From sequence record MN159079.1: a DNA stretch of 64,000 nucleotides; one strand, written 5' to 3'. The notes beneath the pieces were generated by a model. The model was not told the origin of the DNA, searched no databases, and worked only from the letters and a program-made list of their open reading frames with translations. A program made the position numbers and the translations under genes. Positions 27,310 through 32,890 of this stretch are shown here, one piece after another (positions within the stretch are counted from its first letter, which is position 1; every line of letters starts with the position of its first letter).

Positions 27310-28215
27310 TTAGCGCTTACGAGGAACAAGCATACGGATCTGATCAGCCACCCCTTTGGGATCTGCATAAGCCAGATACTTCTTGATCTCATCCTCGAAG
27401 AACATACGGAATTCATTATGGGCGTCTGCGTAACCCTGGATGTCATCCTGGAGTTCGTTAACGCTCACACCAAACTTGGCAACAGCCTCTTGCATCCCTC
27501 GCCGACAGTTGCGGTAGATGTACGCCTTTGTGGCCAGTACACACAGGTATGCAAACTGATCGTACATTTTTGGTGGGATGATTGAGAAGTGCTCGTCGTA
27601 GCTAAGGATTACTTTAGCCAGCATGTTGAACAGTGCCGATCCTGCGTCACGGATAAGGAACGAGTTGTTACCCACCATGGTAAATGACGTGAATGTCCGC
27701 TGAACGTTACTATCGTCCAAAGCAGAGATCATACGGTTTACCGCAGAGCCCATCGATCCGCCACCACCGCACTGAGGACCTGCAACCAGGTTATAACCGT
27801 TGCTTATCATGGAATTCAAATTACCAGGATAAACCTCGATCACTGAGAGGATGCGTCGACCACCAGTAAGGAAGTCAGGAACGTTGACGTGAACGATACC
27901 ACCTTCCAGGTTCTGTACTTGTGCAGAGCTCAGATCAATGGTGCTAGTTTCACCACCTGCAACGTTAAGAAGTGGAGCGACCATTTTCAGTATCACCTTT
28001 TCCCGGATACCTTGTTCAATGGAGAACTCGGTGTTGATCGGACCCCAGGAATGTCCGTACCCTTTATTAGGGTTGTCAAAGGCGATTTCCAACAAGTAAG
28101 GCGAAATGTCGTTAACGCCGTTTACCACGTTGTCGATCGCAAAATCGACCATATTCATGTTAAACCCTCTTGTCATTAGCTGAATACAAAAGATCGTTAA
28201 ACGGCATAAACCCAC
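27310..28215 (-). CDS. conserved phiKZ-like hypothetical/virion protein
   Basis: 301-aa ORF; true start probably the internal ATG (MNMVDFAID) after GAGG. Confidence 0.75.
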   Translation of the reverse strand: MGLCRLTIFCIQLMTRGFNMNMVDFAIDNVVNGVNDISPYLLEIAFDNPNKGYGHSWGPINTEFSIEQGIREKVILKMVAPLLNVAGGETSTIDLSSAQVQNLEGGIVHVNVPDFLTGGRRILSVIEVYPGNLNSMISNGYNLVAGPQCGGGGSMGSAVNRMISALDDSNVQRTFTSFTMVGNNSFLIRDAGSALFNMLAKVILSYDEHFSIIPPKMYDQFAYLCVLATKAYIYRNCRRGMQEAVAKFGVSVNELQDDIQGYADAHNEFRMFFEDEIKKYLAYADPKGVADQIRMLVPRKR

Positions 28216-28261
28216 TACCCCAACTAAGGAGGTAGTGAGTTCATAATATTTGACCTTGCGA

Positions 28262-28720
28262 TTACGAGAAGTCTCGGATTTCTTCCCATGCTTTACCGTA
28301 CTTATTCAGTACGTAGTTGATGTAGAAAACACCGAAGAGGAAAGTGAGTATGGGGTTCACCTTGACCTCACCTTCGCCACCTGTTTTACCCAGGTTCAGT
28401 ATAGCCCGTCGGGCACTGAATGCAAAGATAATCATGGCGATGCAGTACATCAGGGATACGATCATCCCAAGGACCATCATGATCCTGGAGAACTCATCAG
28501 CTTCGCCGAGACCGGTCATCCAGGTAGAGATCCCATAGAGCGCTGCTGCGGTGTACAGGAACGCGCCTGAGAGCACTCGTTCATTACTCTGCTCACTTAC
28601 GTGAGACTGGAGCTTGTACGCCCACATGAGGTTGTACGCACCCAGAGAGACGACAGAGAGAAAGACCATCAACCAGGTGCTGATCTTCATACGGGTTTGG
28701 ATCATAGAAATCATGAACAT
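28262..28720 (-). CDS. integral membrane protein
   Basis: 152 aa with about 4 hydrophobic helices; AGGA RBS. Confidence 0.8.
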   Translation of the reverse strand: MFMISMIQTRMKISTWLMVFLSVVSLGAYNLMWAYKLQSHVSEQSNERVLSGAFLYTAAALYGISTWMTGLGEADEFSRIMMVLGMIVSLMYCIAMIIFAFSARRAILNLGKTGGEGEVKVNPILTFLFGVFYINYVLNKYGKAWEEIRDFS

Positions 28721-28791
28721 TTCATTTCCTTAAAAGTTAGTAAGTTGCAATATATTAACCTTTGGGTAATTTTTAATAGAACATAATAAAA

Positions 28792-28823
28792 GCCTCTACT
28801 CTCCGGTTAGGGAGAGTAGAGGC
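28792..28823 (-). terminator. intrinsic terminator of the minus-strand RNA operon
   Basis: GCCTCTACTCTCC...GGAGAGTAGAGGC followed on the minus strand by TTTTATT. Confidence 0.8.
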
Positions 28824-29688
28824 GATTACTGACGTGTACTACCTTCCCATTACTCACTCACTTCCCGATTATAGATCCGGCCAAAGACCTTATCGGGATC
28901 AAGAGAGTAATAGGCTGATAGCAAGTACGTGAGGGGTTCCAAACGGAAACCGTCACTTCTACCAACTTCCATGCAGAGCAAGCATGGCGGACCGTTCGAC
29001 TTCGTTATTAAGGTGCTCTCTGAAGTATAGTCCCCTCAGCTACCCGCCGCGGCCTCAGCCGGGGGTTTTTGCTAAGGGCATCAGCCTTATATAACGTCGT
29101 CACTGTACTGGCACTAACGAATAGAACCATCGGCGCACGGTTAGGGTACCTACGTGACTCGCGTCCGTTGGGACGGGAGATGGAACTTCCTTATAAAGGA
29201 AGAAAGGGTTTTGAACCCAGGATGCCCTGATCCATTGTAATAGACCATCGCTTCACTCCTTTCATTAGAACCTAGCATGCCTTTTCGGCCAAAATGGTTC
29301 ATCAGAGTTACTGTATATGGGAACTGTTCCGTGGGTTCAAAAAGGTATCCCGGACAATGACTAAGTAACCACACTCCACCCCATCAGCGCAAGCTAATGT
29401 AAGGTACGTCACTATCCAGGGAATAGGGCCGAGAACACGCTGTCTTTTAGAAGGATCGCTTTTGAGTGGTAAGTTCACTCATCTACTGCCAACCGACTTC
29501 CCCGTAGGGCTTCGTCTTAACTAACGTGTCTCGGTGATTCGTACTAGTATCTATCTGGTATGTTTGACACCTTGGGTATCATGGCAAACAGCCTAGGATT
29601 AACCTATGTACAAATATAGTTGAGAGTGTAAGTAAGAAACACGGTAACAGGAGGCGGAGAAACCGTATGAATACACTTACACCCTCAA
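28824..29688 (-). ncRNA. candidate large structured ncRNA (~850 nt)
   Basis: ORF-poor, with many nested and long-range helices; lies between the tRNA cluster and a terminator (see findings). Confidence 0.55.
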
Positions 29689-29692
29689 AGGG

Positions 29693-29768
29693 TGAGAACT
29701 CCTGGAATCGAACCAGGGCAATCCCGCGATGGGTTGTGCGGGCGACTTTCCTTTCGTCTTCAGTTCTC
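29693..29768 (-). ncRNA. tRNA-like RNA with non-canonical 10-nt anticodon loop
   Basis: Acceptor GAGAACT/AGTTCTC, T-arm CCTGG-TTCGATT-CCAGG, D-arm GAC/GTC, stem CCCGC/GCGGG with loop ACAACCCATC; no encoded CCA. Confidence 0.7.
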
Positions 29769-29770
29769 GT

Positions 29771-30034
29771 TTACAGTTCGATGTCGAAAGACATCACTTC
29801 TTGTTCTTCGGTCAACTTGGTGTTAAGATCGTCAAAGCCACCAACGTGTTCATCATCCAGGAAGATCTGGGGAACTGTTGTGACTTGTCGACCACACAAT
29901 TGACTGAGTTGTGTTGTGTCGATTCCGGAAGACTTGATATCAATATATTCGAACGCGATACCTTTATCTTCGAGAAGCTCTTTTGCCTTTACACAGTAAG
30001 GGCAATTATCCTTTCCATAAACTTTGGCTTTCAT
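29771..30034 (-). CDS. grx: glutaredoxin
   Basis: CPYC active site, TVPQIF, VGGFDDL. Confidence 0.92.
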   Translation of the reverse strand: MKAKVYGKDNCPYCVKAKELLEDKGIAFEYIDIKSSGIDTTQLSQLCGRQVTTVPQIFLDDEHVGGFDDLNTKLTEEQEVMSFDIEL

Positions 30035-30058
30035 GGTGTTTCTCTACGGACTTAAAAA

Positions 30059-30134
30059 TGGCAGGCAAGCAAGGATTCGAACCTTGGACATCTGGTTTTG
30101 GAGACCAGCGCTCTACCAACTGAGCTACTCACCT
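30059..30134 (-). tRNA. tRNA-Trp (CCA)
   Basis: 76-nt cloverleaf; anticodon arm CTGGT-CTCCAAA-ACCAG; encoded 3' CCA. Confidence 0.95.
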
Positions 30135-30322
30135 GTAATACGAATTCACATTACTACACACTCGCCGTTCTTCCTAGTTTCCGTTCCGAACGTTCCACGG
30201 TTCACCGTCACCATATACTTTATCCATTCGGACGCCATCTGTGGCTATCAAGTACTTAGGTCCATATTGGTTATGTCTGTTGACACCCGTGTGTAAACCA
30301 GATTAATCTGGGGTGAAAAATA

Positions 30323-30399
30323 TGGCAGGGATAACGGGGCTCGAACCCGCGACCTCCGGCGTGACAGGCCGGCACTCTAACCATCTGAGCTACATCCCT
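30323..30399 (-). tRNA. tRNA-Asp (GTC)
   Basis: 77-nt cloverleaf; loop CTGTCAC; encoded CCA. Confidence 0.95.
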
Positions 30400-30405
30400 A
30401 AAATG

Positions 30406-30504
30406 TTTACCCATCACATGTTTTTACATCGTAGGCGGCTGTGGATCTCAGGTATCTACCGAAGTAGCCTGACCAGATAACCCCGAAACCACATGACAGG
30501 TAAA
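30406..30504 (-). ncRNA. candidate structured RNA between tRNA-Asn and tRNA-Asp
   Basis: 14-bp closing helix with G-U wobbles only on the minus strand; internal CTAC-TTCG-GTAG tetraloop hairpin. Confidence 0.5.
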
Positions 30505-30505
30505 T

Positions 30506-30581
30506 TGGCGGTTCCTGCTGGACTTGAACCAGCGACATATGCATTAACAGTGCACCGTTCTACCTACTGAACTAAGGAACC
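30506..30581 (-). tRNA. tRNA-Asn (GTT)
   Basis: 76-nt cloverleaf; loop CTGTTAA; encoded CCA. Confidence 0.95.
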
Positions 30582-30587
30582 TGAATA

Positions 30588-30732
<145 letters not shown>

Positions 30733-30765
30733 GATGTCGTACCAAGGGTACGACGTACTGGACTT

Positions 30766-30966
30766 TCAACCAGCATTAAAAGAACCTAAGATCAAACCAC
30801 GGACATTGCCTATGGTTCGACCAATCAAAGTGACTTCGATGCGATCAATAGGCAAATAACCATTCGCCAGATCAATCGCTTCCGATAAGTCGACAGCCGC
30901 GATAACCACTGCGTCGTACTCGTCATAGTCCCAATCATCGGTTCTTTCAACTTTATAGATGTTCAT
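30766..30966 (-). CDS. small acidic protein (R-x-D-x-x-x-Y-D-E-Y family)
   Basis: 66 aa with GGAG RBS; paralogous to 56117 and 56405. Confidence 0.8.
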   Translation of the reverse strand: MNIYKVERTDDWDYDEYDAVVIAAVDLSEAIDLANGYLPIDRIEVTLIGRTIGNVRGLILGSFNAG

Positions 30967-31036
30967 ATCGACAGTCTCCGTTGTTAGCGATTTGGCTTTT
31001 CAACGTACTACCAGCAATATCGAACATCTTGCATAA

Positions 31037-31181
31037 CAATGAGTTTCCCAGAGTTTGACATTTTCTATCCATCATGGTCCCCGAGACCGGATTTCGGGAC
31101 GCGCCGGTGCTACTTCGATTCTAGACCGAAGTGTAATGGTGTTTTTTACGATTCGGGGGTTTCTGTCAAACCACTTCATTG
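31037..31181 (-). ncRNA. structured RNA, tandem copy A
   Basis: Same terminal motifs and loops as copy B, with different but still complementary stems. Confidence 0.7.
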
Positions 31182-31190
31182 TTTATTTAT

Positions 31191-31329
31191 CAATGAGTTT
31201 CCCAGGGTGTAGAGTATTTTATCCGCTGCGGGCAGGCCAGGTGGGTCTTCGGGACGCACCCACAGTTGGCTCAAGAGAGCTGCCTTGTGTTTTGGCGACT
31301 GGCCTTTATTTCTCTACACTACTTCATTG
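31191..31329 (-). ncRNA. structured RNA, tandem copy B
   Basis: See copy A; 9-nt spacer between the copies. Confidence 0.7.
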
Positions 31330-32077
31330 AAAGGTGTTAGCTGTTTCTCTCTTGGAGCCCAGCATCGTCACCAGGATAAAACCTTTGTGTGACAACACTC
31401 AATTAACACCTATATCATTGTGACACCTTCTCGGTGTGATACATAGTCGATCACCGCATTGGTTAGATCCCTGATGGACGACTGGACGCTGCGTATAGCA
31501 GTGTTTGTCTCCTAGGTGGGTATCGCCAGCACCGTGTCGGCTATAGGATGTGATCACACGAGGAAACCAGAGGGATGTCCAACCCTTTTCAGTTACATGT
31601 GATCACGAAAGCTGTTGTTAACAAAGTATAATAACTTGTTGTTACTAAATACTTTTCAATTGGCTCTCTTTGAAAGCTAATAGAAAAGAGGTCTTCACAA
31701 ACCGTATGGAAGACCTTTGAAAAATGTAAAGGATTAACAATGAAAAATAAACCAACCATACACGAAAGCCAACACCAATGACCTTCTATATAAACTCTCT
31801 TTGAAGAGCATATATAGAAAGGGGGTAGGAAGACTACCCCGCGGGTAAAAGCAATAACCCAAGAACGTGCAGATATTGAAAGCGGGAGCTTTCTTGATAA
31901 TGACTCTTGGGGGAATCAGTATTAAGAAAGCAAGGGATAAAGCTGCGCACAAAATCCCTTTGCTTGTATTACGTAGGAGTTTATTCAATGGCTTCGTTTT
32001 GACCACTGTCGCGTTCAGTAATCAAAAGGAAGCATTTTTGTACATATAATAACAGACACCCATAACTTTTCAGGTAG

Positions 32078-32093
32078 ATATTATCTACATGAG
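32078..32093 (+). promoter_or_regulatory. putative phage early promoter
   Basis: ATATTATCTACATGAG, a weaker motif variant at the head of the plus-strand cluster. Confidence 0.4.
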
Positions 32094-32182
32094 AAACCCG
32101 TTGGTATCTTAATTGTATGGTACAACTGTGTGGGATTTCCTACACTATATGATTACCTCTATCATCATAAGGAAACAGAGTT

Positions 32183-32890
32183 ATGACTTTGGCTCGTGCT
32201 TTTATCGAACGTATTATCGTTCAGATCATTCTCGCCTTCATGGCGGCAAACTGGCGGAAGATGAACGAACACATCGTCATCGCCCGCGCTTCTGGTATTT
32301 CCCAAGGGATCAAAACCAAGTACCTGGGCGACTGGGGTCCGATCAGTGTCTGGCTGTCTCTCGATGGCCGGGCGTGGTCCATTTGCATCGGTACCGCGAC
32401 CAACTTTATTACTTCCCGACTCACCAACGGTAACTGGGCGTTCAACCGCTCGGTAGTGGAGAACCTCTACAACCAATTTGAAGAGCGGCGTACCGAACCT
32501 CAGTTCGCTGACCTCGATACACTCCGACTCTCTATCGATTCGTTGCTTCTGGAACTTCCGATCGTTGCCAAGCTGGGTGATCGTATCATGGGTAATACAA
32601 TCCGGGTTCTTCCCCAGCTCAACATGTCTGGTGAGTACGCCAGGGAATTGTCGAAGTTGATCTCTGTGGTATTCAATGGTAAAGTCGGTCTCCGCGGCAA
32701 GCCCTCTGGAACAATGAGCCTGGGTATCAGCCGTCTCGAACTGGGTGACGGCGTAGTCACCGGCTCGATGGTCCACCACTTCCGTGACTACTCCATGCCC
32801 TGGGAAGGGAATGCAGTGAACCGTGCTGAGGCACGTGACGCTCTGGTCGAGGCGTTTGTATACGCTATGACCAAACCTGAACTGAAGTAA
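32183..32890 (+). CDS. hypothetical protein
   Basis: 235 aa with AAGGA RBS; terminator 32896-32923. Confidence 0.85.
   Translation: MTLARAFIERIIVQIILAFMAANWRKMNEHIVIARASGISQGIKTKYLGDWGPISVWLSLDGRAWSICIGTATNFITSRLTNGNWAFNRSVVENLYNQFEERRTEPQFADLDTLRLSIDSLLLELPIVAKLGDRIMGNTIRVLPQLNMSGEYARELSKLISVVFNGKVGLRGKPSGTMSLGISRLELGDGVVTGSMVHHFRDYSMPWEGNAVNRAEARDALVEAFVYAMTKPELK

Follow-up and report, generated by a model that had tools for sequence, protein, structure and literature searches.

Genomic setting of the tandem repeats

The window analyzed, a stretch of 64,000 nucleotides from sequence record MN159079.1, comes from Aeromonas phage D9, a phiKZ-like jumbo phage of Ludhianavirus, a jumbo phage genus with a 260-kb genome and multisubunit RNA polymerases. 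In this genome, a ∼1.2-kb stretch without an annotated gene (30966-32183) is flanked by divergent transcription units and contains two repeats on the minus strand, which are followed on that strand by a 66-aa ORF, genes for tRNA-Thr, Asn, Asp, and Trp, and a glutaredoxin gene. The initial annotation had described a tandem pair of ∼140 nt at 31037-31329 (minus strand) that heads the tRNA operon; both copies, here called modules A and B, were found there, upstream of the tRNA cluster and on the same strand. The features of the locus are as follows:

31191..31329, minus strand: module A, 139 nt, with a P1-P2 clamp, tRNA-like core, P6, J6/2, and J2/1 (folding, covariance model, covariation)
31182..31190, minus strand: spacer between the modules, AU-rich, 9 nt, single-stranded, AUAAAUAAA (sequence reading)
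31037..31181, minus strand: module B, 145 nt, with the architecture of module A and rewritten stems (folding, covariance model, covariation)
30766..30966, minus strand: 66-aa ORF (phrog_5444) of unknown function, downstream of the modules and kept beside tRNA-Asn and glutaredoxin in many phiKZ-like phages
30059..30732, minus strand: tRNA cluster Thr(UGU), Asn, Asp, Trp, with an N-gap of this record interrupting Thr(UGU)

The 66-aa protein contained no Pfam domain. The order of its ORF, tRNA-Asn with other tRNAs, glutaredoxin, and, beyond a long non-coding gap, an 846-nt virion structural gene is conserved in many phiKZ-like phages (27310-30966 in the window; loci L163-L171 and L177-L184). The feature labeled tRNA-OTHER (30591-30732, minus strand), whose anticodon loop holds a 76-nt insert, is tRNA-Thr(UGU) split by a run of 10 Ns that is already present in the GenBank record; the LAh10 gene is intact, and D3 and D6 carry different inserts with N runs in tRNA-Thr, the D6 insert being a repeat of the beginning of the upstream gene D9_0106. 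The inserts in these Ludhianavirus genomes are assembly artefacts, not introns. In pAEv1810, the corresponding region (L177:474-1022) holds four tRNA genes (Arg, Met, Asn, and Leu), none of which is among the features annotated there in the record.

Upstream of the modules, the string (T/A)GTTATTATA occurs twice on the minus strand (32045-32054 and 31627-31636), and once at the equivalent place in AhC3_1 (L002:2173-2185); it is a candidate phage promoter, represented by too few sites to judge. A terminator-like hairpin, GGGGTAG..CTACCCC, with a U-rich tail lies between both D9 sites at 31840-31822. The syntenic upstream spacer of AhC3_1 (L002:2290-2480) has no module and contains several hairpins that have repeated ends (CTTCTTAATG...CATTAAGAAG) and may represent an analogous yet unrelated RNA element.

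Folding and covariation of the two D9 modules

Modules A and B share an eight-helix architecture, every helix of which is paired in both copies and with which MFE folding of either copy alone agrees. The stems listed in the initial annotation are Watson-Crick or G-U paired in both copies, including P2 (GUGUAGAG/CUCUACAC versus GUUUGACA/UGUCAAAC), P3 (AGGCCAG/CUGGCCU in copy A versus CCCCGA/UCGGGG, plus an A-C mismatch, in copy B), the hairpin bearing GCGUCCCGAA, and a 3-bp hairpin followed by GGAUA. A covariance model built only from copy A, as present in three near-identical genomes, recovered copy B over its full length (67.6 bits, E ∼1e-14). In the alignment of the two copies, 97% of cells are paired and 16 of 39 pairs are changed on both sides, versus 1-2 in controls with partners slid by 1-3 columns. 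The anatomy described earlier, with stems rewritten between the copies, is accurate except at P1 (CAAUGA-A-GU / AC-UCAUUG, 8 pairs), which is identical in both copies and shows no covariation between them. Likewise, the reported junction TCG-x-x-AAAACAC fits copy A; copy B has x-x-x, and the segment itself forms a small hairpin that covaries (GCC/GGC versus GUAA/UUAC) around a conserved 9-nt loop.

Variation within the genus, drawn from D3, D6, D9, and LAh10, also fits the fold: a C-G pair becomes U-G in the T-like stem, and a new U pairs with the discriminator A. Ludhianavirus genomes have six substitutions in the 284 nt of the modules, all fold-compatible, versus four in 850 nt of flanking spacer. 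The G-U pairs seen when the minus strand is read (G10-U130 and G56-U64 in copy B; U75-G95 in LAh10) accord with the orientation of the tRNA genes. A protein-coding reading was rejected; the repeats are overlapped by plus-strand ORFs, 57 and 91 aa long, yet the 154-nt period of the copies is not divisible by 3 and the conserved blocks occupy different frames in the two copies, so the repeats are not coding. No third copy was found in the whole 260-kb D9 genome, nor in the window with model filters off. The D9 repeats almost certainly represent a real, structured RNA family.

Because both P1 helices are identical in sequence, the 3′ P1 strand of module A can pair across the spacer with the 5′ P1 strand of module B, which makes a hairpin (31173-31198, minus strand). 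In a swapped form, predicted by MFE folding of a 434-nt context, the outer P1 strands close the whole tandem.

Inside the P1-P2 clamp, each module contains a tRNA-like core, the parts of which, with the trailer loops that accompany them, are as follows:

31234..31305, minus strand: module A tRNA-like core, 72 nt (stem pairing, family alignment, direct reading)
31247..31257, minus strand: module A enlarged T-like loop, GCGUCCCGAAG, with CCCGAA invariant family-wide
31199..31206, minus strand: module A trailer internal loop J2/1, CCUGGGAA, with a family-invariant UGGG complementary to CCCG of the T-like loop
31079..31158, minus strand: module B tRNA-like core, 80 nt (pairing, ARAGORN relaxed mitochondrial mode, family alignment)
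31091..31103, minus strand: module B enlarged T-like loop, CGCGUCCCGAAAU (sequence and family alignment)
31045..31052, minus strand: module B J2/1, UCUGGGAA (family alignment)

In module A, the core reads P3 (AGGCCAG/CUGGCCU), UC, a D-like arm (GCC-AAAACACAA-GGC), A, a GCUC-UCUU-GAGC hairpin in the place of the anticodon arm, CAACU, and a T-like stem (GUGGG/CCCAC) with a 13-nt loop. Both copies have the four-way junction geometry of a tRNA cloverleaf (7-bp acceptor, 2-nt U8 linker, 3-4-bp D stem, 5-bp T stem): a 7-bp acceptor-like stem, with the A-C mismatch in copy B, is followed by a UC linker, a 3-4-bp arm with an opening G-C pair and the 9-nt loop, a purine linker (A49) that is present in copy A and absent from copy B, a variable hairpin, a 3-5-nt linker, and a 5-bp G-C-closed stem continuous with the 3′ strand of the first stem. 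The core is followed by G-CCC in copy A and A-CCA in copy B, where the ACCA (31078-31075) is sequestered within the P6 hairpin. In tRNA terms, the segments correspond in turn to acceptor, U8-N9, D arm, position 26, anticodon arm, variable loop, T arm, discriminator, and CCA.

Neither the Rfam tRNA model (RF00005) nor ARAGORN in normal mode called the modules as tRNA; in relaxed mitochondrial mode, ARAGORN called positions 24-107 of copy B as a tRNA-like cloverleaf. The shared elements, judged against RF00005 and phage tRNA-Met(CAU), comprise the four-way junction, the 7-bp acceptor-like stem, a U8-like U, the G-C-opened D-like arm, a single purine linker, a variable stretch of 3-5 nt, the G-C-closed 5-bp T-like stem stacked on the acceptor, and N-CCA remnants. 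Unlike a tRNA, the module has no 7-nt anticodon loop and no G18G19, has a T-loop of 13 nt, and is enclosed by a P1/P2 leader-trailer clamp, to which D9 adds P6. A 7-nt anticodon loop on a 5-bp stem was not found in any family member; the hairpin in that position has loops of 4 and 5 nt in the D9 copies, and of 4-6 nt on 4-8-bp stems over all members. The tRNA elbow is likewise missing, as there is no 7-nt T-loop and the D-like loop (AAAACACNA or AAGCUGA) lacks GG.

Relatives in other jumbo phages

The initial annotation had proposed a covariance model of the two copies as a check. This two-copy model (R1), run with filters off on the loci of the 66-aa ORF in phiKZ-like phages, gave weak yet full-length matches at the syntenic loci of Kc263, Survivor, and Sureiya, and blastn from Kc263 added Yubaba, N1M2, pEt-SU, SXP01, and AH04. 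Single copies of the module thus occur in at least eight further jumbo phages of the nucleus-forming type, and all members score 76-138 bits with the resulting family model (R3). In these relatives, the module lies in a non-coding gap of 700-1,100 nt that extends from glutaredoxin or tRNA-Met to the 846-nt virion structural gene (the D9_0101 homolog), and in every phage carrying a module it adjoins tRNA genes on their strand. The phiKZ-like jumbo phages that share the family infect Aeromonas, Kosakonia, Pantoea, Serratia, Klebsiella, Edwardsiella, Shewanella, and Erwinia, and the family flags “empty” gaps of 700-1,100 nt in many jumbo-phage genomes as RNA genes.

By model search, the module was absent from the closest Aeromonas jumbo phages (AhC3_1, pAEv1810, CF8, ZPAH34, and AerS_266), and it is therefore dispensable for the lineage; OBP, RisingSun, Miami, EL, and an SPN3US-like phage also lack it. 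A synteny search of IMG/VR by way of the 66-aa ORF yielded 16 loci, none with a module. When checked by model or by eye, the candidates that strict pattern scans returned from viral, metagenome, and genome collections were all rejected as chance or coding matches, and a literature search with literal motif strings returned only chance primer matches.

In the 13 distinct module sequences, all helices covary, P1 among them (CAACG/CGUUG, CAGCG/CGCUG, and CAAUG/CAUUG); P2 and the acceptor-like, D-like, and T-like stems have up to five pair types per position. For a formal count, 15 distinct alignment rows were used, namely the 13 modules and two tRNA-Met sequences. In this alignment, 91.6% of cells are paired, 20 of 33 pairs are changed on both sides, and the covariation score is 0.51, versus 0.17 for shuffles and ≤0.12 for slid partners. 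The bases invariant in the family are the first C, the last G, the opening G-C of the D-like stem, CCCGAA, and UGGG. Rfam 15 returned only tRNAs, at the gathering score, at E ≤10 on 2 kb, and at E ≤10 on a 316-nt stretch. The suggestion of an unrecognized structured non-coding RNA is borne out by the compensatory changes and by the Rfam 15 check, which gave no family; the RNA family is new, as neither Rfam 15 nor the literature searched contains it.

The T-like loop contains CCCGAA, and the stretch of trailer between P2 and P1 contains UGGG; CCCG is complementary to UGGG, forming a possible pseudoknot as judged by base complementarity. Covariation neither supports nor refutes this pairing, because the CCCG and UGGG bases never vary. 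The U of the “UCCC” loop is unconstrained (C in LAh10 copy A, A in other phages), and an additional UCG:CGA pairing is possible in D9 only, being broken in D3 and in LAh10 copy B.

The R3 model also links the core to a particular tRNA. Its only non-module matches in 170 kb of phage DNA were five genuine tRNA genes (13.5-20 bits), all tRNA-Met(CAU), from N1M2, Sureiya, Yubaba, OBP, and pAEv1810; the adjoining Asn, Arg, Ser, and Leu tRNA genes were not matched. Positions 18-106 of R3 align with the real tRNA-Met genes, module UGCCCAG-UA-GC... lying over tRNA GGCCCUG-UA-GC... and ...CUGGGCG-G-UCA over ...CAGGGCC-A-CCA. The N-CCA remnant reads ACCA in module B of D9 and in AH04, and GUCA or GUUA in other members. 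The element is a tRNA-derived or tRNA-like RNA, tandem in Ludhianavirus and single elsewhere; the initial annotation had missed both the tRNA-derived cloverleaf core and the relatives in other jumbo phages. On the strength of the cloverleaf geometry, the N-CCA remnants, and the tRNA-Met matches, the core probably originated from a tRNA, its cloverleaf being closest to tRNA-Met(CAU). CGAA of the large loop is best read as the remaining C56-R57-A58-N59 of the T-loop, with an insertion of ∼6 nt. The comparison strongly suggests that the core lost its anticodon loop and D-loop GG, that the T-loop grew from 7 to 13 nt, and that the P1 and P2 leader-trailer helices were added. In such a history, a tRNA gene would have been turned to another use, losing its decoding parts and gaining a clamp, with the elbow reconnected to a new trailer. 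The family offers a testable handle on RNA processing, stabilization, or traffic in these phages.

The Kc263-type phages carry the module as a single branch within a larger conserved non-coding RNA. The layout of this RNA is AAAUCCARGAG-UGAACGG-hairpin-GCUAYUGUAAGUAGC-CUCUUGG-UGGGU, a variable hairpin, the module, and UACCC (L163:3660-3920, L164:4555-4800, L166:4050-4310, L168, L169, L171, and L165:4520-4680). OBP keeps the large RNA, with a plain hairpin replacing the module. The large RNA had no Rfam match, and its 5′ domain was not found by nhmmer in D9 or in the Aeromonas relatives. Its position in other phages corresponds in D9 to 28720-29770 (minus strand), a stretch of ∼1 kb downstream of glutaredoxin, where the sole annotated CDS is 123 nt long and none of the signature words of the large RNA occurs.

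Putative function and alternative readings

The best explanation overall, falling a little short of an even chance, is that the modules are tRNA-derived processing or stability elements that give rise to stable tRNA-mimic RNAs, as their sequence and predicted fold suggest. The features that are kept are ones read by tRNA-processing enzymes, namely the core junction, the 12-bp acceptor/T stack, and in part N-CCA; the features lost are those for decoding and for a normal elbow. The modules would be transcribed together with the small ORF and the tRNA genes, and tRNA-handling machinery, foremost RNase P, would read them as cut marks because the 7+5-bp acceptor/T-stem stack is kept. Cuts would fall at or beside the cloverleaf, and endonucleases would also cleave the AU-rich spacer, for which AUAAAUAAA is a candidate site. 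The products would be compact, end-protected, exonuclease-resistant RNAs of ∼140 nt, or tRNA-like fragments, which may punctuate or stabilize the transcript and may further act as a tRNA mimic toward a tRNA-binding protein. Pairing of the invariant CCCG with UGGG of the trailer would tie the tRNA “elbow” to the clamp.

Taken by itself, a function of the modules as processing marks or mimics is put forward tentatively, as plausible rather than probable. The specificity domain of RNase P normally reads the tRNA elbow, and the remodeled T and D loops remove that feature and may hinder RNase P; its access is also uncertain because the single strand that the clamp leaves 5′ of the acceptor-like stem is only 3-6 nt long. 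Further points against processing are that the Rfam tRNA model and normal ARAGORN are silent, that the pseudoknot shows no covariation, that the modules are no more conserved than their flanks within Ludhianavirus, and that they are dispensable in sister genera.

Precedents for parts of this reading come from other systems. Like the modules, the mascRNA-type elements of MALAT1 and NEAT1 are non-decoding tRNA-like cloverleaves within a longer transcript, and they serve as cut marks for RNase P and RNase Z; unlike the modules, they are eukaryotic and without sequence relation, and the module has a much longer clamp and a remodeled T-loop. For the mascRNA tRNA-like element of MALAT1, a leader-trailer interaction is reported to promote 3′-end maturation (PMC8457004). 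Closer in setting are the species 1 and 2 RNAs of phage T4 (rnaC, 139 nt; rnaD, 119 nt), which are similar in size and lie in tandem inside a tRNA cluster, separated by a 6-nt spacer. rnaC has a tRNA-like T arm with the canonical GGUUCGAAUCC, the module T arm being remodeled; the T4 pair lacks the P1/P2 clamp and the CCCG:UGGG pair, and the folds differ. R1, run with filters off on the T4 tRNA region, matched neither rnaC nor rnaD. We know of no report of function for the T4 RNAs, of which the modules may be a modern counterpart. Bacterial Y RNA-like YrlA shares a terminal stem formed by its 5′ and 3′ ends, as well as a distal tRNA-like domain, and differs in that the module has no canonical T arm; the YrlA Rfam model did not match the modules, and a sub-threshold match in OBP overlaps true tRNAs.

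Among the alternatives, the strongest, yet unlikely, is a trans-acting tRNA mimic or decoy that titrates a tRNA-binding protein of host or phage, for example a tRNA-targeting defense nuclease, a modification enzyme, or an RNA-handling factor. Phage tRNA clusters are tied to countering tRNA-targeting defenses, and the retained acceptor/T stack and N-CCA remnant, the lost decoding features, and the invariant surface loops would all suit a decoy. However, the anticodon loop, the usual target of such nucleases, is missing, the CCA remnant is internal and not conserved, and the candidate partner protein is hypothetical. The ligand-binding RNA and the protein decoy named in the initial annotation are possible, putative roles.

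A further, rather improbable reading makes the clamped module an RNA-handling signal of nucleus-forming jumbo phages, acting through the CCCGAA/UGGG surface that replaces the elbow. It would be a tag for processing, for retention, or for export across the phage nuclear shell, or else a mimic that disarms host tRNA-directed defense. How RNA exits the phage nucleus is an open question (PMC12908238; PMC11077065).

A tandem riboswitch-like leader that senses a ligand or protein and controls the 66-aa ORF and tRNA operon is very unlikely. Its complex fold with invariant unpaired nucleotides, and the tandem placement upstream of an ORF, are reminiscent of tandem aptamers, but the interval from 31037 to the start codon at 30966 contains no terminator-like or SD-sequestering platform; in the eight other phages, the module follows the tRNAs and glutaredoxin as part of a larger non-coding RNA and does not precede the 66-aa ORF.

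Very unlikely, too, is a self-cleaving ribozyme that follows a twister-like double-pseudoknot logic and cuts the operon leader. Twister has two pseudoknots, one joining L4 CCC to L1 GGG and the other joining L4 GC to L2 GC. Twister segments are L4 GUCCCAAGC, L2 AUAAA, and L1 GAGGG (PMC8501958, Table 1), and D9 segments resemble them (GCGUCCCGAAG, CGG-AUAAAAUA, and CUGGGAA), with the strings GUCCC.AAG, AUAAA, and GGG in L4, L2, L1 order. The layout of P1, internal loop, and P2 is also twister-like, as is a conserved hairpin loop that could pair with the 3′ strand of the conserved internal loop, and in bacteria, hammerhead and twister ribozymes show enrichment close to phage genes and to one another (PMC10085705). 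Against this, the twister (twister-P1/P3/P5), twister-sister, pistol, hatchet, and hammerhead models gave no match at E ≤10 on 316 nt, the module has no N-A-A cleavage loop, and the second pseudoknot has no GC partner after P2. The single nucleotide between P1 and P2, at the twister cleavage position, is A in module A of D9, G in module B, and C in the Kc263 group and AH04, so the cleavage-site A is not kept. Nor are the D9 strings GUCCC.AAG and GGAUAAAA conserved in the family, where ...CCCGAA... and an A-rich linker remain (loop UAGAACCCGAACU and linker UAAAAAACAAUAU outside D9), and tRNA ancestry accounts for CGAA as T-loop residues. Twister-sister has conserved L1 residues G5-C6-A7-A8-G9 / G59-C60-U61-C62-A63-U64, SL4 residues G29-U30-G31-C32-A33-A34-G35-U36-C37, and C-A cleavage in L1 (PMC5660989; residues read from the numbering in its text), and the L1 and SL4 residues are absent from the module loops. 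The twister likeness of the D9 copies, on which the ribozyme suggestion of the initial annotation drew, is by these comparisons a local coincidence, and that suggestion is not supported.

Equally improbable are decaying pseudo-tRNA genes or a DNA-level element (MITE-like with inverted ends, or an operator) lacking an RNA function: the terminal inverted repeat CAATGA...TCATTG, the two identical P1 sequences, a within-genus substitution density not below that of the flanks, and the absence from the nearest Aeromonas relatives would fit, but the genome holds no further copy, the frames of the conserved blocks do not suit a coding sequence, G-U pairs occur on this strand only, the non-tRNA helices P1 and P2 covary across genera along with the tRNA-like stems, and CCCGAA and UGGG are invariant over hosts from Aeromonas to Shewanella and Erwinia.
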